From contig NC_043001.1 of the NCBI RefSeq assembly GCF_006345805.1, positions 76,508,001 through 76,572,000 on the forward strand: 64,000 bases of DNA, in the 5' to 3' direction. A program made the translations under genes and the position numbers. How positions within the stretch are numbered: the stretch's first letter is position 1; each line of letters begins with the position of its first letter. Source of the stretch: Octopus sinensis. Taxonomy: Eukaryota. Of this stretch, positions 5,025 through 63,817 are shown piece after piece. The notes beneath the pieces are model-generated. The model was not told where the DNA came from, searched no databases, and worked only from the letters and a program-made list of their open reading frames with translations.

Positions 5025-5406
5025 ATATGTATGTATGCATGTATGTATGTATACATGTATGTATATATGTTTGTATGTATGTATGTATGTATGTATGTAT
5101 GTATGTATGTATGTACGTATGTATGTATGCATACATATGTATAAATATATACATACATACACACATGCATATATATATGCATACATATATATATACATAT
5201 ATACATACATCCACACACACATATATACACATATATATATATGTATACAGATATAAACAAATACATAAATACACACGTATACACGTGTATACACACACAT
5301 ACGCATATGTATAGCTGTATATATACACATACATACACATCCATATATATATATATATATACATATGTATACATAAACACACACACATATATGTGCGTGC
5401 GTGTTA

Positions 5407-5439
<33 letters not shown>

Positions 5440-5490
5440 TGTATGTATGTATGTATGTATGTATGTATGTTGTATGTATGTATGTTTGTA
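5025..5490. repeat. Compound (TATG)n/(TA)n/(CA)n microsatellite
   Basis: Direct reading. Confidence 0.95.
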
Positions 5491-6242
5491 TGTATTTATG
5501 CCTAAACTCGGAGTTTCATATACGTAAATATCCATGTAATAAAGAAACATTATGGCGGGCAAGCTATTCTTGTAATACGGGTAGGATATATGAGAACTTT
5601 ATACTTAAATAATTATTTTCGAAAATCACAAAGCGAAATACTGAGTGCATCAAAAAACCAAAAAAAAAAAAAACCCCCCCAAAAAACGTTTTTCCACCAT
5701 TTTGGATAAAAGTTTCAACACCAAACGCATGATCTGCACAAGTTCAAATCATAATGATAACTAAAAATAACAACGGTGAAACATTAGCTATATGAAGATA
5801 TTATTACCACCTGCCTAACTTCAATAGTACGACATCAATGGCTGTGTAAAATATGAGCGATTTTTCTATTTCAACCTTATACGTAGTAGCAAGCCTCTAA
5901 CTGAATTTGAGACCGACACGCAAATTCAATCAAACGTTTTTTGATAGTTAACTGGACGTATGAGATAGACTGATGTCAGATAGAAGCTCACTTCTAGCAT
6001 GTTTCAATAGCACATGATCAAATAAACTAATGGTATCATCATTAAGGTTACTAATTGCGAATTTGTGAGTCATAATATAAGGTTGATTATTAAGGCACAG
6101 TAGAAATGAGAAAAGAGAAATGAGCAAAGCCAAACGTTGTAGTTGGTCGCGGTTCAGCTATCAGTTGTTTGCTTAGACCAGAGGTCGGCGAACCGGGGTA
6201 AATTACCCTAAGTGGAGTAACTGATTAGACTCATTCGACATA

Positions 6243-12954: not shown

Positions 12955-13740
<786 letters not shown>

Positions 13741-16715: not shown

Positions 16716-16868
16716 CTGGTTTGTTTGCTTGTTTGTTAGTTTATTTGTTTGTTTGCTTGTTTGTTAGTTTATTTGTTTGTTTGTTTGTATGTTTGTATGT
16801 ATGTATGTATGTATGTATGTATGTATGTATGTATGTATGTATGTATGTATGTATGTATGTATGTATGT
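16716..16868. repeat. (TTTG)n grading into (TATG)n
   Basis: Direct reading; abuts the 3' end of the R4/Dong element. Confidence 0.95.
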
Positions 16869-19404
16869 CTCTTCTACTTTTTGATTATCATAAATTTTCC
16901 ACTTAAGAAGGAGCCGGTTTCCAACAAAGATACAAGGTTCCATCTCTGGGATGTAGTTAACACAGACAAACTCACATTTGGAACTTAAGAAAAGTCTTGC
17001 ATATTTTTACTGTTTCACTCAGCTTATACTTGAAATGTACGAATCAACCGGTCTATTTCTCTTTCTGAAAACCCCCAGCTTTTCCAGATTCTCCTTTAAG
17101 CATTTACTAACAAAACCTAGTGCTCCAATTATTATTGATACCAGGGGCGGACTGAGCCGTCGGTCAATCGGACACTGCCCAAAGGGACGGAGCTCTGAGA
17201 GGCTCGCACTCTACATGTAAACTCTACTAAAACACACATTCTACGGGGCCCGGTAAATAGTTATGCTCGAGGGCCCTTAATACTCTCAGTCCGTCCCTAA
17301 TTGGTATGAATATGAATTCACAGTCTGGATGCAGAAGCTGAACGTTTCGAAGCAGTTCTGGATAGAGAAGCTGGAGCTTTCGAAGCAGGTGTTTCCGAAG
17401 TAGTTTTTCTTTGATTTTCAAAGAGATATTTATATCTGCAGGGCAGCTGACCTCTATGATGGTACATACCTTTGCTCCGCTGTCCCAAACAACAATATCC
17501 GGCCTGTTATGCTTACATCTGACAGAAGTTTTGATGGAAATATTCCACCAGTATTCCTTGAGTTGATGTTTATGAATGTATTCCATAACAGAGGGATTTT
17601 CAGTTTATTTCAGGGCAGTCTTTTTTGTAGATGGTATTGTAAACTGTTTTAGCAACAACATCGTGCCGCATAAGGAGGTAGTACCGTGACGACATTTTAG
17701 GACAGCTGCTAATCACATGCGTGATATCTTCCACAGAAACATGACATAGCCTACGCATGCGGTTGCAGCTTGAGATTACAAGAGCGTCACTGTCTCGCTT
17801 GTTCACGAGGTACTTTGTGGCAATCTCCTGTACCTGGATTTTAAACGCATAGCCTTCAAAGTGTAATGTGATGTAGTGGTCTTGTGCCCAAGAGAGGCTG
17901 CGTTTCGTGTCAGTTCTACTGTCTTCTTCAAGCTTCCGGGAAACATACCCATGCATAGTCTTTTTTTGTATGCTGAGTGCTTTCCATCCAAGTCTTCTCT
18001 GAGGTGAGAGAGCCCAGCTGTTTTGGGGCTGTACAGGAGATCATCAGGTAGAGAGTGTTTCTTGAGGATCTCACTGCCAACTAGTACAATGTTGCTCACT
18101 TCACTTTTCAGCACTACATTTATATATTTATTTTTGTTGCAGTCGTTTAGCAGGAGTTGCCTTAGTGACACCATACGGCATTCAAAGCCCGTCTGCACTG
18201 ATCTCAGGCCTATACCACCTTCATTTCTTTTTAGGTAGACCCTGTCAACATCACTGTTGCTGTGGAAGTTCCCAGCTGTTGTCAGGATTTTGCAGGTTTT
18301 GATATCTATGGAGTGGATTTCCTCTACAGACCAATCAGGTATCCCAAATGTTGGGATCAACACTGGTACTGTAAATGCATTGTGGAATATTGTTTTGTTG
18401 TAAGGGGAGAGTTCCGACTGCCATATTTTCCTAAGTCTGGTGTAATATTCTCGGGTCTCTCTATCTTTATTAACAGTGCCTTCATATGATACATTTTCGT
18501 CTATGCCCAGGTACTTATAACATTCTTTGTGTGGAATGGGGTAGATAGAGATACCGTTGATGCACAGGTTTTGGGTTTGGGAACTGAGGTTCTGCGATCT
18601 TTAACCAAATATGAACATTGCTTTTGGCCAAATTCCATACCTATATCAGCTGAAAATGTTGCTATAAATTCCAGTTGCTTTTTGGCATTGTTAACACTTT
18701 TAGAATACATCTTGAGGTCGTCTACAAAGAAATTATGAGTTACATTGATATTTCTAGCAGTTGAAGGTCCTAGCATGTAACCATTTATTTTCTGCAGTAA
18801 GAACGATAATGGATTCAGTGCCAAAATGAAAAGAAGAACAGTAAGACTATCTCCCTGGAATATTCCCTTTGAAATGCCTATACTATCAGAAACAATTATT
18901 CTCTTCTCAGTTGTAAGGGTAAGAACTGTTGTCCATGTCTTTGTGAGTTTCTCTATAACAGCAATTAAAGCAGTAGGTACTTTTGCCAGATGAAGGCACT
19001 TCAACAGCCATGAATGAAGGATAAATTCGAACGCCTTTCTATAGTCAAGCCATACTGTCACAAGGTTTCTACGTAGTTTTCTTACTTCAGATAGTACAAC
19101 TTTGTTTATCAAATGTTGTTCGGCACATCCCCATATTCCCTCGTTTCCACCAGCCTGTTCATCAGTCATAATGTTGTTCGACTCACATATCCTTCAAAGT
19201 GTAATGTGATGTAGTGATCGTGTGTCCAAGAGAGGCTGCACTTCGTATCAATTCTACTATCTTCTTCAAGCTTTCGGGCAACATACCCATACATAGTCTT
19301 TTTTGTTTTTTTACATTCTGAGTGCTTTCCATCCAGGTCTTCTCTGAGGTAGGAGAGCCCAGCTGTTCTGGGGCTGTACAGGAGATCATCAGGAAGAGAG
19401 TGCT
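16869..19404 (-). mobile_element. R4/Dong-clade RLE non-LTR retrotransposon, 5'-truncated and frameshifted (ACAT lineage)
   Basis: RT motifs EQAGG..GCAEQHLIN, WLDYRKAF, GIFQGDSL, FFVDDLKMY; RVYLKRNEGGIGL; CCHC finger RRLCHVSVEDITHVISSC..RHDVVAK; RLE NRPDIVVW..IIEVSCP; C-terminus [13 protein letters not shown]; then 3' UTR. Confidence 0.93.
17142..17299. mobile_element. hAT-type MITE (158 bp) nested in the LINE RLE domain
   Basis: TIR CAGGGGCGGACTGAG / CTCAGTCCGTCCCTA; 8-bp TSD ATTGATAC/ATTGGTAT; excision restores FIFIPIIIGALG. Confidence 0.85.
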
Positions 19405-19466
19405 TATGTATGTATGTATGTATGTATGTATGTATGTATTGTATGTATGTATGTATGTATGTATGT

Positions 19467-19746
19467 TATTTCAAGATTTATAACCAATAGAGAAAGAGCC
19501 GGTTTCTAACATAGATTCAAGTTTCCTTCATTGGAATTTCAACATCAACAACAGAGTAATTTGTTTGTATGTATGTATATGTACAGATCTGTATGTTTTG
19601 TTTTATGTATGTATTTTCATGCATATGGATGCCTATCTAGACATGCTCATATGTATTTAAATGATAAACTTTTGGAAGGTTTTACAGATTTTTACAGTTC
19701 CAGTGATGGATTGGATCTGTAGTCTTCGAATTAGCTTACTCCTTTC
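19467..19746 (-). mobile_element. 280-bp 5'-truncated R4/Dong copy (ACAT lineage, second subfamily)
   Basis: [26 protein letters not shown] plus 3' UTR motif GAAACCGGCTC; (TATG)n on both sides (19405-466 and 19747-820). Confidence 0.85.
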
Positions 19747-19844
19747 TGTATGTATGTATGTATGTATGTATGTATGTATGTATGTATGTATGTATGTATG
19801 TATGTATGTATGTATGTATTTGTATACATATATATGAATATATA

Positions 19845-19884
<40 letters not shown>

Positions 19885-19896
19885 TATATGTATATA

Positions 19897-20460
19897 TTGG
19901 GTTGTCCGGAAAGTTTGTGCCGATTTATAGTCGCTTATCTTTCGACTTATTTTAGAAGATGTTTGAGTCCACAAAATAGGATTTGATTACACCTCCATTT
20001 AGAGCACAGTTTAAGCTATCTTTTCGTGGAAGAAAGTTTATGTTCCTATAACCTGTGTTAATTCTGTAACCCTTTAAATTGGTAGATTAGAAAGTTCATT
20101 TTCGGCACTTGATGCTTTGGGAACCAGACAAAAATTGCTGCAGTTCAGCTGGGATGTGTTACCCCACCCTCCATATTCACCAGATATTGCTCCTTCGGAT
20201 TTCCACTTATTCAGGTCTCTGCAGAATAGTCTTAATGGTAAAAAATTTAATTCCGTGGATGACGTAAAAAGATACCTTGATGAATTATTTGCCATGAAAC
20301 CAACTTAATTCTGGGAAGAGGGTATTTTCAAGTTAAAGGAAAGATGGGGATGCATTGTGCAACAAAATGGTTCATATTTGGTTGATTAAAAATGTAATGG
20401 CAAGTATTTATTGACCTTTTCTTTCCTTTAAAATTCGGCACGAACTTTCCAGTCAACCCA
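19897..20460 (+). mobile_element. Internally deleted mariner, 564 bp, inside (TA)n
   Basis: TIRs TTGGGTTGTCCGGAAAGTTTGTGCCGATTT and AAATTCGGCACGAACTTTCCAGTCAACCCA; retains the C-terminal PHPPYSPDIAPSDFHLF..W. Confidence 0.9.
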
Positions 20461-22527: not shown

Positions 22528-24214
22528 TGTACAAAGCCCGAAATTTTGGGGGAGGGGGCCAGTCGATTAGATTGACTCAAGTACGCAGCTGGTACTTAAT
22601 TTATCAACCCCAAAAGGATGAAAGGCAAAATCGACCTCGGCAGAATTTGAACTCAGAACGTAAAGACAGACGAAATACCGCTAAGCATTTCGCCCGGTGT
22701 GCTAACGTTTCTTATTTCTTTACTGCCCACAAGGGGCTACACACAGAGGGGACAAACAAGGACAGACAAACGGATTAAGTCGATTATATCAACCCCAGTG
22801 CGTAACTGGTATTTATTTAAACGACCCCAAAAGGATGAAAGGCAAAGTCGACCTCGGCGGAATTTGAACTCACAACGTAACGGCAGACAAAATACCTATT
22901 TCTTTACTATCCACAAGGGGCTAAACACAGAGAGGACAAACAAGGACAGACAAAGAGATGAAGTCGATTACATCGACCCCAGTGCGTAACTGGTACTTAA
23001 TTTATCGACCCCGAAAGGATGAAAGGCAAAGTCGACCTCGGCGGAATTTGAACTCAGAACGTAACGGCAGACGAAATACCGCTAAGCATTTCGCCCGGCG
23101 TGCTAACGTATCTATCAGCTAACCGCCTTTCTAAACATGTATATTATATAGTCCCTGACCAGCAAGAAACAGTAGGCACATCTCCGGTAAAGCTCACTCT
23201 TCGGTCTGACATGAAGGAACATATATGGAACTAGAAATACTGTGCCTGCAGAAGAGTGGGGTGGTCAGAAATGGAACGTCTATGGTCATATATTTGCTAC
23301 ATCAGTGATTACCTGATGCTATAAACAACAATAATAAGCCTTTCTGCTATTGGCACAAAGCCAGAAATTTTGGGGGTGGGGCTAGTTGACTATATCGAAG
23401 TCTGTGCTTGACAAGTGCTTATTTCATGGACCCCGGAAGAATGAAAGGCAAAGTCAGCCTCGGCGGAATTGGAACTCAGAACGTAAAGACAGACGAAACA
23501 ACAACAACAACAACAACAACAATAATAATAATAATAATAATAATAATAATTCTCTCAACTATAGGTGCAAAGTCTGAATTTTTTTGGTGATGGGACTAAT
23601 CGATTACATCGATCCCAGTGATTAACTGGTACTTATTTTACCGACGCCGAAAGGATGAAAGGCAAAAGCAACGTCGGCGGATTTTGAACTCAGAACGTAA
23701 GTACGAAAGAAATGTCGCTAAGAATTTTGCCCCTACATGTAATCGATTTTGTCAGTTCACCGCCTTGCAAATACTAATAATATTGTTTTCAGATTTTGGA
23801 AGAAGTCCAGCACGTTCTGGGAAGGGGTTAACTCGATTATTTCGACCCAAGTGTTCAAATGGTGCTTTTTTTTTTTTTTACCCTAGAAGGTTGAAATCGA
23901 CCTCGGCGGATTTTGAACATGGAACGTAATGCCGGAAGAAATGACACCAAGCGTTTGATCCAGCGTGCTAGCGATTCTGCTAGCTCGCAGCCTTTGCAAC
24001 AATAATGGCTTCAAATTTTGGCACAAAGCCAGCAATTTTGGGGGAGTGAGTAAGTCAATGACATCGTCCTCAGTGCTCAACTGGTTCTCAATTTATTGAC
24101 CTCGAAAGAATGAAAGGCAAAGTTGACCTCAACGGAATTTGAACTCAGAATGTAAGGACGATACACCGCTAAGTATTTTGCTCGGTCTGCTAAAGATTTT
24201 GCCATCTCGCTGCC

Positions 24215-24289: not shown

Positions 24290-25396
24290 GTGAATTCCGA
24301 ATACAACAAATTTCGGAATTAGAGATAGACATACAAGAAACAGGCACAGAAAAAGCTAAGCGCATGAAAACCCGTGCCAAATCTGCGGCCTTAGATATTC
24401 TGAATGATAAATGGCAAGAAAAACCTCTCTATGGCAAATACCCAAAGAGAGCAAATAATGCAGATGTTGACAAAGCCCTGACCCATCAATGGCTAATAAC
24501 CTCTGGCTTAAAATCTGAAACAGAGGGGTTTATCATAGCAGCTCAAGATCAATGCCTACCAACAAGAAACTACCAGGCCAACATATTAAAGATCAGAAGC
24601 AGTCCAACGTGTCGTGTATGCCAGCAACAAAATGAAACCATTGACCATGAGGTCTCCAAGTGCAGTCTTCTAGCGCCTACAGATTATCTCAACAGGCACG
24701 ATAGAGCTGCACATAATTCACTGGGTAATCTGCAAAAACCTGGATTTGCCCCATGAAAAAAACTGGTGGGAACACAAACCACCCCCAGTGCTTGAAAATG
24801 ACCACATCTCACTCCTCTGGAACTTCACCATTCAAACTGACAGAAAGATAGATGCAAATAGGCCGACATCATATTGAAGACTTCAAACAAAGAACATGCC
24901 TCCTCATTGATATGACTGTCCCAATCGATATAAACGTATCTGTCAAGACCTACAAAAAACTGAGCAAATATAAAGATCTTGAAATAGAAATAAGCAAAAT
25001 GTGGAACCTGAAGACTAAAACAATACCTGTTGTCATAGGTGCCCTGGGAATGATAGCAAAAGGGGCTGATAGCTACCTAACTCAGATACCAGGAAACCCA
25101 AAAATGGCAGAAATTCAAAAGATAGTGCTCATGGGAACTGCTCATATCCTACGCAAAATACTTTCTATGTAATCTCAAGGTTTAAAACAAACATAATTTT
25201 CGGTTTAAAAAAAAAAAAAATTTATTTATTTTTTTTAATTTTTAGACATTCATTAGTACAACACCAAAAAAACCCCCCCAAATATATGGCACACTAGGCA
25301 TAACAACAACATGAACTTCCAACCTGTTGTCTCTTGAGGTCTCTGGGTGAGACTTGGAGCCAACTTGTACAAATATAAAGCAAAAGTCAAACATAG
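24290..25396 (+). mobile_element. R4/Dong-clade LINE 3' fragment (TAA lineage)
   Basis: GLKSETEGFIIAAQDQ, CRVC..ETIDH..SKC..RHD, LLIDMTVP..KYKDL..PVVIGALG..IQKIVLMGTAHILRKILSM*; (TAA)n on both sides. Confidence 0.93.
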
Positions 25397-25514: not shown

Positions 25515-25676
25515 TTAATTTTTGCCACAAGGCCAGGAGTTTTTCGGGGGAGGGTGCTAGTCAATTACATCGACCCCAGTGTTCAACTGGTACTTAATTT
25601 ATCGACCCCGAAAGGATGAAAAGCAAAGTTGGCCTCGGTGGAATTTGAACTAACGATTCTGCCAGCTCGCCACCTT
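25515..25676 (-). mobile_element. SINE family A
   Basis: Core and head motifs present, with an internal deletion. Confidence 0.85.
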
Positions 25677-25687
25677 TAATAATAATA

Positions 25688-26766
25688 GGCAAATGTACAC
25701 AGGCTCTACATGAAGAGAGGGTGGACGTGGGCTGACTAGCGTACGGGAGTGCGTCAACAGTTATAGAAGAAATATGACAGAATATTTGCCAAATAGCAAA
25801 CAAGCCCTGCTACAGTATGCTGCTAGTGCTTGAGTTAACAAAAATGAACTTGAGAGTGCTCATGAATTCTGATCAAGATCAGCCAACGAGAGAGAAGAAA
25901 CCCTACTCCGTATGGAATCAGATGGTCAGTTCCACCGTGAACCCAATAAATTAAAAGATCAGGAAGCATCATGGAGGTGGCTCAACAAGGGTGACCTAAA
26001 AAAGAATATTGAAAACCTAATCATCGCGGGCCAGGACCAGGCATTGAATACCAGCTCAGTTAAAAAGAATATATACCACACATGTGCATCGGACCTCTGC
26101 AGAATATGTGGAAAGAGGGTTGAAAGTGTAACTCACATTATTAGTGCTTGTGAAAGTCTTGCGCAGAAAGAGTACGAGCGTAAATAGGACAAAGTAGCCC
26201 CAAACCTCCACTGGTTACTATGCCGTAAGTATGGGTATGACGTTACGGGTGCTTGGTACCAACATACATCGGAAAAGGTAATGGACGAAAAGGAGAAGGC
26301 AAAAATCCTTTGGGACTTTGATTTCCAGACAGACAAAGTGTAAGAGCATCGAAGGCCAGATATAGAAACCTTTAGGAAGGACAAACAAGAATGCCTAATA
26401 ATCGACGTAGCAGTGCCAGGAGATCAACACATCATCATGAAAGAGAAAAAGTTGATAAATATGGAGACCTGAGAATTGAGATTGCTAAGATGTGGCAGCT
26501 ATGAGAGTCAAACATAAAGGTTATCCCTGTTGTCATCGGGACACTGGGTTCAATACCACCCAATCTGAAAAAACATCTGAAAACCTTAGAAATACCCTAC
26601 AATCTAGATGTATTGCAAACGTTGGCATTACTTGTAACTGCACGCATATCGCGTAAAATACTGTCTATCTGAGGTCCTCGTGACTTGACAGACAGTACAA
26701 ACCCCCGGTAGAAGCAATATCTTCAATCAACAACCTCACAATATTGTATACTGTGCGATGTCTATG
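25688..26766 (+). mobile_element. R4/Dong-clade LINE 3' fragment (TAA lineage, different subfamily)
   Basis: SWRWLNKGDLKK..LIIAGQDQAL, CRICG..ESVTHIISAC, RRPDI..LIIDVAVP, PVVIGTLG; (TAA)n at 25677-87 and 26767-92. Confidence 0.92.
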
Positions 26767-30074: not shown

Positions 30075-30670
30075 TTTCTTTATTGCCCACAGGGGGCTTA
30101 ACACAGAGGACAGACAAAGGGATTGAGACGATAACATCGACCCCAGTGCGTAACTTGTACTTATTTAATCGACCTCGAAAGGATGAAAGGTAAAGCCGAC
30201 CTCGGCGGAATTCGAACTCAGAACGTAACGGCAGACGAAATACCGCTAACGATTCTTACTTCTTTATTGCCCACAAGGGGCTAAACATAGAGGGGACAAA
30301 CAAGGACAGACAAAGGTATTAAGTAGATTATATCGACCCCAGTGCATAACTGGTATTTAATTTATCGACTCCGAAAGGATGAAAGGTAAAGTTGACCTCG
30401 GCGGAATTTTTAACTCAGAACGTAGCGGTCGACGCAATACCTATTTCTTTACTACCCACAAGGGGCTAAACACAGAGGGGACAAACAAGGACAGACAAAC
30501 GGATTAAGTCGATTATATCGACTCCAGTGCGCAACTGGTACTTATTTAATCGACCCCGAAAGGATGAAAGGCAAAGTTGACCTCGGCGGAATTTGAACTC
30601 AGAACGTAGCGGCAGACGAAATATCGCTAAGCATTTCGCCCGGCGCGCTAACGATTCTGCCAGCTCGCTG
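30075..30670 (-). mobile_element. SINE family A trimer
   Basis: Three head-to-tail units with tail CCCACAAGGGGCTAAACACAGAGGGGACAAAC. Confidence 0.92.
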
Positions 30671-38413: not shown

Positions 38414-38460
<47 letters not shown>

Positions 38461-38597
38461 TGTATGTATGTATGTATGTATGTATGTATGTATGTATGTA
38501 TGTATGTATGTATGTATATTTATATAAGCGAGAAAGAGAGAGGGAGAGAAAGAGGGAAGAGATATACATATGGGGTGAGAAAGAAGAGTGAGAAGGT

Positions 38598-39689: not shown

Positions 39690-40235
39690 TGTAATTACAT
39701 GCTGAACTTCATGAATTTTTTGCATATTTTGACCGTGCCTTTGTCAAAGTGTAGCTGTAATCTTCTGAATAACCGAGTTTTCTTTTTAATGTCTGAAACC
39801 CAGTTAGCAGTGAGGTAGATATTTGCATAGCTAAGATTTCCAATAATTGTTAGTAGAAATCTAAAATTGTAGTCCGGATTGTGTAACAGCAGATTTCTTA
39901 TCAGTTCCACACGTATGCATGTTTTCTTTTTCTGACATCTTCTGGGTAACTGATTTCAACAACTGCTCATAGTTTCTTTTTCAGTTTCGAGTCATGATGT
40001 CCGGTATGTTAGGCTTGCATTTTATTAAAGTTTTGACAACGACATTCCCGCATTATTCTTTCAAGCTGCATGTTGTTATATCCTTCACATCACATTTGCT
40101 TATGTTTGTCTCCTTTCATTTCAATAGATTTCATGATATAATGTTCTAACCACGACATCGTGTCTCAGAAGTAGCTAATACCATGAAGACATTTTCGGGC
40201 AGTTGCTTATGATAGGAGCATCCTGAAATATTAGT
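39690..40235 (-). mobile_element. Old R4/Dong 3' fragment (ACAT lineage)
   Basis: ISNCPKMSSWY*LLLRHDVV, KCKPNIPDI, ELIRNL..NPDYNF, RLFRRLQL..GTVKICKKFMKFSM*; runs into degenerate ACAT/ACAC repeats. Confidence 0.82.
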
Positions 40236-40239
40236 TATA

Positions 40240-40660
40240 AATTTTGGCACAAGGCTAGTAATTTTAGTTTGTGTGTTTGTGTGTGTGTATGTGTGCGTAT
40301 GTGTGTATGGAATGGGGGTCATTTACATCAACCCCAGTGTTCAACTGGTACTTATTTTATCGACCCCAAAAGGATGAAAGGCAAAGTGGACCTCGGCGGA
40401 ATTCGAACATAAAACGTAAGGACGGATAAAATGCCGCTAAGCATTTGCCCAGGATGCTACCGATTCTGCCAGCTTGTTGACTTTGGTTTCAGGTGAAGTG
40501 GTAAGTCGAATACATCGACTGGTAATTAATTTATTGAACCCGAAAGGATGAAAAGTAAAGTGGATCTTGGCGGAATTTGAACTCAGAATGTGAAGATGGA
40601 TGGAATGCCGCTAAGAATCTTGCCCGGCGTGATAACGATTCTGCCAGCTCGCCGCCTTGA
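40240..40660 (-). mobile_element. Two tandem SINE family A copies
   Basis: Core motif occurs twice. Confidence 0.85.
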
Positions 40661-46383: not shown

Positions 46384-46428
46384 GATGTATCTATCTATCT
46401 ATGTATGTATGTATGTATGTAATGTATG

Positions 46429-46459
<31 letters not shown>

Positions 46460-48610: not shown

Positions 48611-48641
<31 letters not shown>

Positions 48642-49143
48642 TGTATGTATGTATGTATGTATGTATGTATGTATGTGTGTGTGTTTGTATTCATATATAT
48701 ATATATTTACATATACATACATACATACATATATATATATATATCCATATATATATATACATATATACATATGTATATATATATATTTCGCTAAAAAATT
48801 GATGACGTTTTTCTTCCGTGGTCAAACTTGTCGTTTTGCTTGGCTGGTTTCCTAAACAGGATACAGTTGGGGGTCTTTTCCTTATAATCGTTGAAGCTCG
48901 GCTTTGATTGGTTTGGAATTATATGACGTCAGTGAACAGTGCCAGAGACCACAGCTACTACTGACTTAACTGATATAAACCCAACAATCACAAGTTGACC
49001 AAAATTACGACAACCAAGAATCACTACAGTTGCTCCCATCGGAACACAAGGTAAAATCTATAATGATCTCCTGCACTACACTTGACAAAACAGTACGGAA
49101 CGACTTACACCTTATAATATATATTTTTCGCCTTTTCAAGAAA

Positions 49144-52030: not shown

Positions 52031-52075
52031 TACCAGTTCTGTGTGCATACACACATACATACATACATACATACA

Positions 52076-52106
<31 letters not shown>

Positions 52107-53160
52107 TTACATACATACATACATACATACACACACACACATATACACTTATATAAATATATACACACATATATATATATGCACACACATACATATGCAT
52201 GCATCTATATACATAATCATCATGCTGATGATGGTTATTGACCGGGAAACAGGTGTTCGCGAATGTCCTCTTCATGACATGTTAACTTTGGAGAATCCTT
52301 CAATCTTGAGATTATCTCCCCGACTCACATGAAGCTGGTATTAATTGCCATTTGTTAATTATAATATCTTCTAGAGTGGGAGAATGGTGTATGGTACTTG
52401 ATATAATTGTATCTATCTATGTTAATCAATTGCTTATAAGTTTTTCTTAATTTCGAAATATGTTATCATTAAATGGTTTTGTATAATTTCAAAATACAAT
52501 GGAAAATAAAGGTTGTCACAGTTCTTTTCTACCGGTTTCATCTCTAATTAAATGTCTTTAGAATCATTAACTGTTTATCTTTTTAAAATACAATGTCATT
52601 AGATAATTTTGCATAATTCCAAACACAATGCAAAACAATAAGGGTAGTGTTGAGAATGTAAACACGTTAGTAACAATTAGTAACAAGTGACACAATATCA
52701 TTCCATGGGACAAATTTATCTCAAAGGGCGTAATATAATCATAACTTTTGAAAGAATGCATTTAATTTCCGTTGATATATTTTTCTAAAATATAGAAAAT
52801 ATAGAAAGAACACACCACCAGTGTTCTTTCATTATTGTTGTTGAGTCGCAACTCTTAAAAACAAGGAAAATAATCAAATCCAGCTGAACATGCTTTGCAC
52901 AATATCTTAAATGCTGATTCTGTCGAAAATTGTCTTGTTTATGGCTGCTTTATTTGCTATGGATGTTAGATGTTGTATCACTCTTCTATTGAGTGTCAGG
53001 CTAGTTTAACCAATATCATTTCTCAACTACCTTTATTAAAACATTAAATTTTGGGAGCAACATGGAAAACTATTTCTAATTTTAAAAAGACGCTCAATAA
53101 ATCGTTACATTTTTCATAGTTAAGTTGGTTATATTTACTTTCTTTTACATTAAGTTTTGT

Positions 53161-63207: not shown

Positions 63208-63312
63208 TATGCACATACATACGCAATACATACACACACACACACATATACATACATACATACATACATACTACATACATACATACATACATACATACAT
63301 ACATACACAACT

Positions 63313-63466
63313 ACATGCATGAGAATAGATATATAAAACAAAACACAAATCTGCACATATACATCTATACATACGATATATATGTAGTTGAAATTCCAAT
63401 GAAGGAGCCTTGGATCTAGATTAGAAACCGGCTTCTTCTCTATTGGCAAAATAAAACTGAATAATG
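63313..63466 (+). mobile_element. R4/Dong 3' UTR-only copy (ACAT lineage)
   Basis: Matches the reverse complement of 19467-19625; (ACAT)n upstream and ACATACAT downstream. Confidence 0.82.
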
Positions 63467-63570: not shown

Positions 63571-63817
63571 TGCGCCCTTTTAAAGCCTAGCCAGGCTCAT
63601 GGGCCCGGTTTCTCAGTTTCAATGGCATATGTGTTCCCCAGCTGGACAGGACGCAAGTCCATCGCAGCGTTACTCATTTTTGCCAGCTGAGTGGACTGGA
63701 GCAACGGGAAATGAAGTGTTTTGCTCAAGAACACAACGCGTCACCCAGTCCAGGAAGCGAAACCACAATCTTACGATCATGATGCAGACACCCTAACCAC
63801 TAAACTATGCGCCTCCA
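63571..63817 (-). mobile_element. SINE family C, tail type 2
   Basis: TGCGCCCTTTTAAAGCCTAG..CAGCTGAGTGGACTGGAGCAAC..CCCTAACCACTAA. Confidence 0.88.

Follow-up and report, generated by a model that had tools for sequence, protein, structure and literature searches.

A sister branch of the Dong retrotransposons with (ACAT)n and (ACTT)n microsatellites as probable insertion targets

Several retrotransposons without long terminal repeats (non-LTR elements) are specific for microsatellites: Dong inserts into (TAA)n, Waldo into (ACAY)n, Mino into (AC)n, Kibi into (TC)n and Koshi into (TTC)n (PMC3812793), and the same holds for the NeSL-related Togen, which uses (TG)n, and for some leech HERO families (Kojima and Jurka, 2015). 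Here we describe elements whose closest reference is Dong, found in a 64,000-nucleotide stretch of the Octopus sinensis genome (RefSeq assembly GCF_006345805.1, contig NC_043001.1, positions 76,508,001 to 76,572,000 of the forward strand), which we call the window. They are dead, mostly 5′-truncated copies of a non-LTR retrotransposon of the R4/Dong clade with one open reading frame (ORF) and a restriction-like endonuclease (RLE). We consider it likely that they represent a sister branch of Dong within this clade that inserts into (ACAT)n microsatellites, and in some relatives into (ACTT)n, through target-primed reverse transcription (TPRT).

The Dong elements (Bombyx mori; DongAg, DongAa, DongBg) likewise have a single ORF with reverse transcriptase (RT), CCHC linker and RLE, lack N-terminal C2H2 zinc fingers, and lie in one orientation in a microsatellite, often in tandem. 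Dong is the best BLASTP reference for the elements described here and forms their sister clade, from which they differ in target ((ACAT)n or (ACTT)n as opposed to (TAA)n; PMC3812793, PMC3774820), in C-terminus (GTVKI.K.F as opposed to GTAHILRKVL), in having a stem-loop in the 3′ untranslated region (UTR), and in protein sequence, identity being about 30%. R4 (Ascaris lumbricoides / Parascaris) belongs to the same clade and has the same domain order, but its target is a specific site in the 28S rRNA gene. R2 (R2Bm, R2Tg) has homologous RT, linker and CCHC regions and presumably shares the same TPRT with a protein-recognized 3′ UTR RNA, whereas it carries N-terminal zinc-finger and Myb domains, inserts into 28S rDNA and falls in a separate clade. 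Togen and the leech HERO families are also RLE-type and microsatellite-specific, but they belong to other RT clades. Waldo, known from arthropods, falls in an unrelated clade; it has two ORFs and an endonuclease of the apurinic/apyrimidinic (APE) type. Its target (WaldoAg1/2 and WaldoFs1, R1 clade) is essentially the same repeat as that found here (PMC3812793); the shared target would be a case of convergence.

In Octopus vulgaris, long interspersed nuclear elements (LINEs) classified as Dong-R4 are abundant and recently active, with 5 families and 1129 recent insertions (PMC13282606; also PMC8967140). Those reports classify and count the elements without describing microsatellite insertion or lineages with two targets. 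The octopus Dong-R4 LINEs are probably the same families as the elements of the window. We found no (ACAT)n- or (ACTT)n-specific R4/Dong element in the literature searched, a search that did not extend to Repbase, Repbase Reports or Dfam.

Element copies and repeats in the window

A sequence-only reading of the window had placed four copies at 16869-19404, 19467-19746, 39690-40235 and 63313-63466, and tblastn, translation and alignment found all four at those positions. They are designated A to D and are listed here with the arrays around them, most of which were delimited by Tandem Repeats Finder (TRF).

16869..19185, minus strand: main body of copy A (tblastn to P0004 residues 489-1104; three-frame translation; RVT_1)
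19186..19404, minus strand: rearranged 5′ segment of copy A, ~220 bp (tblastn match 19375-19184)
19467..19746, minus strand: copy B (ORF listing; tblastn 19743-19666; alignment with A, C and D)
39690..40235, minus strand: copy C (tblastn 40219-40127 and 39934-39698; alignment)
63313..63466, plus strand: copy D (alignment; stem-loop; junction)
16774..16868: (TGTA/TATG)n array, reading (ACAT)n on the strand of copy A, whose 3′ end it flanks (TRF period 4)
19405..19466: (TATG)15 array, lying 5′ of copy A and 3′ of copy B (TRF)
19747..19820: (TGTA)n array, 5′ flank of copy B, then unrelated sequence (TRF 19747-19897)
63213..63310: (ACAT)n array, 5′ flank of copy D (perfect runs 63248-63307)

The three intact 3′ ends, those of A, B and D, all enter (ACAT)n directly in the sense of the element, through the same junctions that the earlier reading had given. 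With a bar marking the junction, copy A reads GTAGAAGAG|ACATACAT, i.e., GAAGAG|ACAT; copy B reads TTGAAATA|ACATACAT, i.e., GAAATA|ACAT; and copy D reads AATAATG|ACATACAT, with 9 nt of repeat remaining downstream. The array following copy A comprises 23.8 units with 96% matches and includes a perfect run at 16794-16868, and the array on the 5′ side of copy B has a perfect run at 19747-19819. Copies A and B, which represent two subfamilies, share one array head to tail, the repeat preceding, separating and following them; this tandem arrangement had also been recognized. The ~100-bp (ACAT)n array 5′ of copy D is preceded by unrelated sequence, in which the covariance model of the family stem-loop described below finds no match.

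We assessed these junctions against the supply of arrays in the window. With 12 bp as the minimum length, the window has 41 perfect (ACAT)n arrays, which cover 1.9% of it, and by simple arithmetic a random end would abut the start of such an array in the correct orientation with p ~3e-4, and three ends with p ~3e-11. No element adjoins 8 of the 12 large (ACAT)n arrays:

36-122, 5026-5129, 5410-5500, 12955-13133, 38431-38517, 46400-46458, 48612-48676 and 52053-52131: large (ACAT)n arrays free of elements

This abundance of element-free arrays indicates that (ACAT)n is an ordinary microsatellite of the genome and not merely a tail of the element. (ACTT)n is represented in the window by a single 17-bp array.

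The window also holds two fragments of the (TAA)n lineage of Dong:

24290..25396, plus strand: (TAA)n-lineage Dong fragment (tblastn with P0071, 43% identity; TRF; sequence)
25657..26766, plus strand: (TAA)n-lineage Dong fragment, start approximate (tblastn; sequence; junction)

The first has the C-terminus ..MGTAHILRKILSM followed by a stop; its 5′ flank is (TAA)25 and its 3′ flank (AAT)n(AAC)n, with the 3′ junction CATAG|AATAAT. The second has the C-terminus ..LLVTARISRKILSI followed by a stop and the 3′ end TCTATG|ATAATAATAA, and the repeats bounding the pair include (ATA)8. The two fragments follow each other head to tail within (TAA)n/(AAT)n arrays, at a distance of a few kb from the copies of the (ACAT)n lineage, and serve as an internal control in which each lineage occupies its own repeat within one window.

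All four copies are incomplete. Copy A is 5′-truncated and degenerate and covers residues 489-1104 of the 1158-aa relative P0004 (tblastn), spanning the RT motifs, linker, CCHC motif, RLE, C-terminus and 3′ UTR; its RT, linker and RLE segments were mapped to 19187-17290 on the minus strand by tblastn with full-length relatives. In three-frame translation the RT region (Pfam RVT_1, E=2.6e-12) reads WLDYRKAF, GIFQGDSLT and FFVDDLKMY, and is followed by a linker with the CCHC motif, by an endonuclease of the PD-(D/E)xK type (NRPDIVVWD..IIEVSCP), and then by IPI|IIGALG and the C-terminus. The same translation reveals at least 3 frameshifts and several stops, and the copy is clearly dead. The stretch had been taken as one copy, but it is not collinear throughout: the segment 19186-19405, attached upstream of the RT region, repeats the linker (P0004 residues 875-936) and is 90.6% identical over 213 nt to the internal segment 17848-18060. 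The duplicate may have arisen when reverse transcription jumped from one RNA template to another, or by rearrangement at a later time. Two further changes were seen within the copy, one of them resembling a miniature inverted-repeat transposable element (MITE):

17144..17297: MITE-like insert, 154 bp (read directly from the sequence)
17324..17388: 33-bp tandem duplication in the coding region downstream of the RLE (TRF period 33, 2.0 copies)

The insert ends in 13-bp inverted repeats, GGGGCGGACTGAG / CTCAGTCCGTCCC, and splits the copy between ..FIPI and IIGALG.., with the reading frame continuing beyond it; it entered later than the element itself. The 33-bp duplication doubles the peptide LLRK.LQLL.

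The remaining copies are shorter. Copy B holds the final ~26 codons and a ~190-nt 3′ UTR of the second subfamily, and copy D, of the same subfamily, is a 3′ UTR alone. Copy C is an RLE and C-terminal fragment ending ..GTVKICKKFMKFSM and a stop; it closes in degenerate CA/CATA-rich sequence and has no intact 3′ UTR or 3′ end. The alignment shows a C-terminal coding block common to A, B and C and a 3′ UTR block common to A, B and D. A 17-nt core of the latter, AGAAACCGGCTYYTTCT, occurs exactly three times in the window (16906, 19491 and 63423), compared to 0.03 occurrences expected by chance. The 5′ truncations of the copies are typical of TPRT.

Flanking repeats and phylogeny of the relatives

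A protein search returned 87 relatives, of which the best is only 49% identical (38-49% for the relatives whose flanks were compared); the best named relative is from Argonauta hians. Full-length relatives are 1083-1162 aa long and all have the C-terminus GTVKI.K.F..F. The loci analyzed were the contigs of the protein relatives together with 80 further loci from a scan of metagenome contigs; L002 and L011, whose contigs end inside the element, contributed no junction. In about 10 other assemblies, every element end reached by a contig is bordered by a microsatellite whose type varies with the lineage, the 5′ side of L092 being the exception.

(ACAT)n on both sides: L001, L004, L006, L086-L089, L090, L095
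(ACAT)n on one side: 5′, L003, L094 (Argonauta hians); 3′, L092
(ACTT)n on both sides: L008, L091, L093
(ACTT)n on one side: 5′, L007, L009; 3′, L010
(AAT)n flanks, some on both sides: L012, L014-L025, L057 and others (C-terminus ..LLGTAHILRKVL)

Copies of the element are found in one orientation in (ACAT)n arrays, often in tandem, and full-length copies have the repeat on both sides. A shared flank and a single orientation were found for the three window copies with intact 3′ ends and, elsewhere, for 9 (ACAT)n and 6 (ACTT)n loci, and no element with mixed flanks was seen among the loci examined. While insertion into (TAA)n defines Dong proper, the ends of the tetranucleotide lineage abut (ACAT)n or (ACTT)n, and (TAA)n flanks occur only in the sister clade with the reference Dong sequences. 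In the GTAHILRK lineage, (AAT)n flanks are present at a minimum of 11 loci and at both such copies of the window, and the ladybird protein P0071 is followed by (A)n(TAA)n.

Individual loci provide additional context. L090, with (ACAT)n, and L093, with (ACTT)n, come from one and the same assembly. The tract around the L090 element, on a 69-kb long-read contig, is a compound one, (GATA)n/(CCAT)n/(ACAT)n, and its (ACAT)n part holds the element. At L086, unique sequence follows the downstream array. At L095, the (TACA)n array closing the first element is immediately followed by a second, 5′-truncated one of the same family (5726-6150), a head-to-tail arrangement also seen in copies A and B. As a separate observation on L090 (745-1270 and 5170-5380), a ~60-bp unique segment (..CAAGGCTGAGTCTCTACTGGACTACACCTTATGTTT..) occurs on both sides, and for this reason the microsatellites of this locus may belong to a larger repeated unit.

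We considered whether these flanks could have arisen without any target preference. Simple repeats crowd the window (TRF gives 267 rows), and in such a microsatellite-rich genome elements might come to lie beside an array by chance or accumulate there passively. This is extremely improbable given the value of ~3e-11 for three correctly oriented abutting ends, the recurrence of the same repeat beside relatives in about 10 unrelated assemblies, and the restriction of the co-resident (TAA)n lineage to (TAA)n arrays. Alternatively, the RT could generate or extend (ACAT)n itself, the element being inserted without sequence preference and the 5′ arrays representing earlier tails. Simple-repeat tails are common among non-LTR elements in general, and pairs of head-to-tail elements with an array between them, as in window copies A and B and at L095, are compatible with such a process. 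However, the arrays 5′ of window copies B and D and of L001, L090 and L094 are preceded by unrelated sequence in which the family hairpin is absent, and this argues against a purely self-made tail. The array at L090 is part of a compound microsatellite, two thirds of the large (ACAT)n arrays of the window (8/12) have no element alongside, and the points of 5′ truncation vary among copies, yet all of them adjoin the repeat. Apart from the 5′ end of L092, no intact-ended copy was found in non-repeat DNA. We therefore regard a self-made tail as improbable and favor insertion into the repeat.

The clade of the elements was determined with RT-to-linker reference sequences from Mahbub et al. (2017; PMC5678591, supplementary alignment), comprising R2Bm, R2Dr, R8, R4, Dong of Bombyx and Aedes, three HERO, two NeSL, Utopia and CRE1. 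In BLASTP comparisons, the ORFs of (ACAT)n- and (ACTT)n-flanked elements scored 260-307 bits against Dong and 183-230 against R4, whereas every other clade remained below 140 (Utopia 112-137, R2 81-115, NeSL ~100, HERO 62-94). In a neighbor-joining (NJ) tree based on Kimura-corrected p-distances (448 columns, 200 bootstraps), R4, Dong and all of these elements were united with 99.5% bootstrap support. The (TAA)n-flanked loci grouped with both reference Dong sequences (87.5%), and the (ACAT)n- and (ACTT)n-flanked loci, together with window copy A, formed the sister group of this (TAA)n clade (91.5%), with R4 branching outside both Dong-type clades and HERO, NeSL/Utopia and R2 falling elsewhere. 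Both the R4/Dong assignment of the sequence-only reading and the C-terminal signature by which it had separated the lineages, GTVKI.K.F here as opposed to GTAHILRKVL in the (TAA)n lineage, are thus upheld. The lineage is a deep clade that occurs in several animal groups and includes (ACTT)n-specific families.

As some HERO families target microsatellites (Kojima and Jurka, 2015) and HERO is an RLE clade with microsatellite-specific families reported from a leech, we also asked whether the elements could be HERO members. Their HERO scores (62-94 bits, as opposed to 260-307 for Dong), the separate position of HERO in the NJ tree, and the RT motifs WLDY.KAFDS, GIFQGDSLS and FVDDLKLY, which agree with Dong and R4 and not with HERO, leave almost no likelihood for this assignment. 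On the basis of the scores and the 99.5% support for R4, Dong and these elements, HERO membership was rejected.

The history of the target within the tetranucleotide clade was examined in a second NJ tree of the 31 longer proteins (Kimura-corrected p-distance, 779 columns). The (ACTT)n element L091 groups with the (ACAT)n set L003, L086, P0003 and P0008 (= L092) with 100% support. L009 and L010, both with (ACTT)n, lie outside a 100%-supported crown containing all other users except P0027 (= L095), which has (ACAT)n, and L007 pairs with P0012 (= L093, (ACTT)n) at 83%. Written in the same register, (ACAT)n is (TACA)n and (ACTT)n is (TACT)n, one base per unit apart, and (TAA)n becomes (TACA)n by one inserted C. 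Because (ACAT)n and (ACTT)n users interleave at two 100%-supported nodes, the tree supports at least two switches between (TACA)n and (TACT)n.

Candidate determinants of target choice

The junction phase of intact 3′ ends is biased, as the earlier reading had proposed. Eight of 11 (ACAT)n junctions begin with ACAT, and one each with TACA, ATAC and CATA (chi-square p=0.004; p=0.013 without one non-independent copy). All four (ACTT)n junctions begin with CTTA, and the phase of (TAA)n-lineage junctions is mixed. The 8:1:1:1 pattern is what would be expected of a fixed junction plus chance extension by the last bases of the element itself. Those last bases are purine- and A-rich and have no complementarity to the target, so that pairing between an unextended RNA end and the target is unsupported.

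All 11 of the 3′ UTRs examined contain, 21-41 nt upstream of the 3′ end, a small two-stem structure. The 5′ strand of an outer stem of 3-4 bp (longer in the window subfamilies) is followed by TT(G), an inner 6-bp stem whose loop commonly reads TTGTT, then (C)C and the 3′ strand of the outer stem. The fold proposed earlier for this 3′ UTR does pair, but it comprises only the outer stem of the conserved hairpin.

16903..16947, minus strand: stem-loop of copy A (covariance model 40.4 bits, E=6.6e-7; ends 34 nt upstream of the 3′ end)
19488-19532, minus strand: stem-loop of copy B (covariance model 37.4 bits)
63398-63442, plus strand: stem-loop of copy D (covariance model 38.3 bits)

In an almost gap-free MAFFT alignment of the eleven 3′ UTRs, 85.5% of cells are paired and 9 of the 10 pairs change on both sides. 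The covariation score is 0.762, compared with 0.29 ± 0.05 for shuffled alignments (0/500 attain 0.762) and 0.08-0.16 after sliding of the 3′ partners, and RNAalifold independently yields the same structure. Among 46 sources, the covariance model matches only its eleven training sequences, three of which are in the window, and it does not find the hairpin in (TAA)n-lineage loci; in L092, L093 and L094 the same hairpin is visible by eye. By analogy with R2, the protein likely recognizes its own RNA through this hairpin, which is a candidate binding site.

The relatives encode a single ORF in which the RT is followed by a CCHC motif and then by a PD-(D/E)xK endonuclease; Pfam detects only RVT_1 and zf-RVT. 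The two latter motifs read CRLCK..VEDI.HVIS.CP and RPDIV..(13-15 aa)..E.SCP..EK..Y, with degenerate versions retained in copy A, and residues D1048, E1063 and K1079 are invariant or nearly so in the protein alignment. The region from RT to CCHC aligns with solved R2 proteins (E=3e-28). N-terminal of the RT, Pfam finds nothing, and a Cys/His pattern is absent, leaving neither zinc fingers nor an APE endonuclease there. A conserved segment of ~70 aa is present instead (..RNRDY...F.WT.EL..DL..CY......GYM.R.K..WD..HPE......L..QA.R..), of which the (TAA)n lineage has its own version (..W...EN...M.CYY....GY..RM...W..........QRLADQRR..). The AlphaFold model of the N-terminal 80 residues is a three-helix bundle (mean predicted local distance difference test score, pLDDT, 78.6), and we conjecture that the segment is a probable DNA-binding domain. 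We did not adopt a Myb or homeodomain label for it, as the best Foldseek match has E=4.7. The third helix is near-identical between L007, with (ACTT)n (KNLRDQASRVHK), and L086, with (ACAT)n (RNLREQANRVHK). Since it barely differs between these families, it may not discriminate the two repeats.

These observations raise the question of whether recognition is simply loose, of the (TACW)n type, such that any family could use either repeat and the apparent targets would mirror the supply of arrays in each host. The interleaving of (ACAT)n and (ACTT)n users in the tree and the nearly identical third helix of L007 and L086 would fit this explanation, and with one 17-bp (ACTT)n array in the window, the present host offers little choice. 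However, a single assembly contains both L090 and L093, each with the same repeat on its two sides, no element has mixed flanks, and the two groups differ in phase (|ACAT as opposed to |CTTA). For these reasons we consider loose recognition unlikely.

If the elements do select their repeat, insertion may proceed as follows. By inference from R2, R4 and Dong, the protein would bind the hairpin of its own 3′ UTR, recognize the repeat duplex and nick the (ATGT)n strand; cDNA synthesis would be primed at or just inside the repeat, with second-strand steps presumably as in R2. By analogy with Dong and R4, the full-length RNA would probably be produced by read-through from upstream and self-cleavage at the 5′ junction. 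In Dong and R4, a ribozyme resembling that of hepatitis delta virus (HDV) cleaves the co-transcript exactly at this junction (Eickbush et al., 2013, PMC3774820). Following on the upstream repeat, at no more than ~35 nt from the 5′ junction, full-length relatives carry a GC-rich hairpin and then RGACGTGT:

L003 27-70, L004 69-120, L006 116-160, L007 57-100, L008 101-140: 5′ hairpin and RGACGTGT
L086 96-140, L093 1491-1520, L095 819-860: 5′ hairpin and RGACGTGT

Several points weigh against the explanation given here. The presence of each (ACAT)n array at the insertion point before the element arrived is inferred, and at the full-length element L092 the 1.7 kb upstream contain no array. For most families the sample is one or two loci, and exclusive use of a single repeat per family is unproven. 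The junction phase may come from the parent copy via read-through RNA and not from the nick, which would make it weak evidence for precise cleavage. Both trees are NJ trees on simple distances, and within the tetranucleotide clade most nodes beyond the two cited are weak. The N-terminal model has no significant match in the PDB (best Foldseek E=4.7). An Rfam scan of eight loci (E<=1) found no ribozyme but only microsatellite artefacts (mir-297), and RNAalifold on nine 5′ ends, which align poorly, gave no consensus pairs.

A variant of specific insertion, which we consider doubtful, is that target choice is set mainly by the RNA and not by the protein. Transcription would continue into the repeat downstream of the element, and the resulting (ACAU)n or (ACUU)n 3′ tail would pair with the nicked strand of the microsatellite; a rare mis-insertion into a related repeat would then pass to all progeny as a new specificity. 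Such a mechanism would explain the repeated switches between (TACA)n and (TACT)n, the near-identical N-terminal helices of families that use different repeats, the seamless junctions and the fixed phase. If true, it would make the clade a naturally re-targetable group of RLE retrotransposons.

Implications and an additional repeat

RLE retrotransposons are a model for site-specific insertion and the basis of R2-derived gene-insertion tools, and the way in which they acquire their targets is poorly understood. The clade described here provides closely related, naturally occurring variants that divide among three simple and similar targets, (TAA)n, (TACA)n and (TACT)n. Some hosts in which two lineages live side by side, each true to its own repeat, together with a compact covarying hairpin, make a tractable comparative system that may be useful for mapping the determinants of target choice in RLE elements. 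Dong-R4 elements reportedly rank among the most active LINEs of octopus genomes. If they enter, and perhaps extend, (ACAT)n and (TAA)n arrays, this would have a bearing on the unusual microsatellite richness of these genomes. Repeat annotation is also affected, as copies bounded by simple repeats lie in sequence that is usually masked first.

A SINE-like unit (short interspersed nuclear element) of ~185 bp (..GTCGATTACATCGACCCCAGTG..GGATGAAAGGCAAAGTCGACCTCGGCGGAATTTGAACTCAGAACG..) was also observed in the window, in short tandem arrays and in dispersed copies:

22713-23080 and 30107-30630: SINE-like unit
~25560-25650, 40310-40450 and 63590-63800: further occurrences of the SINE-like unit

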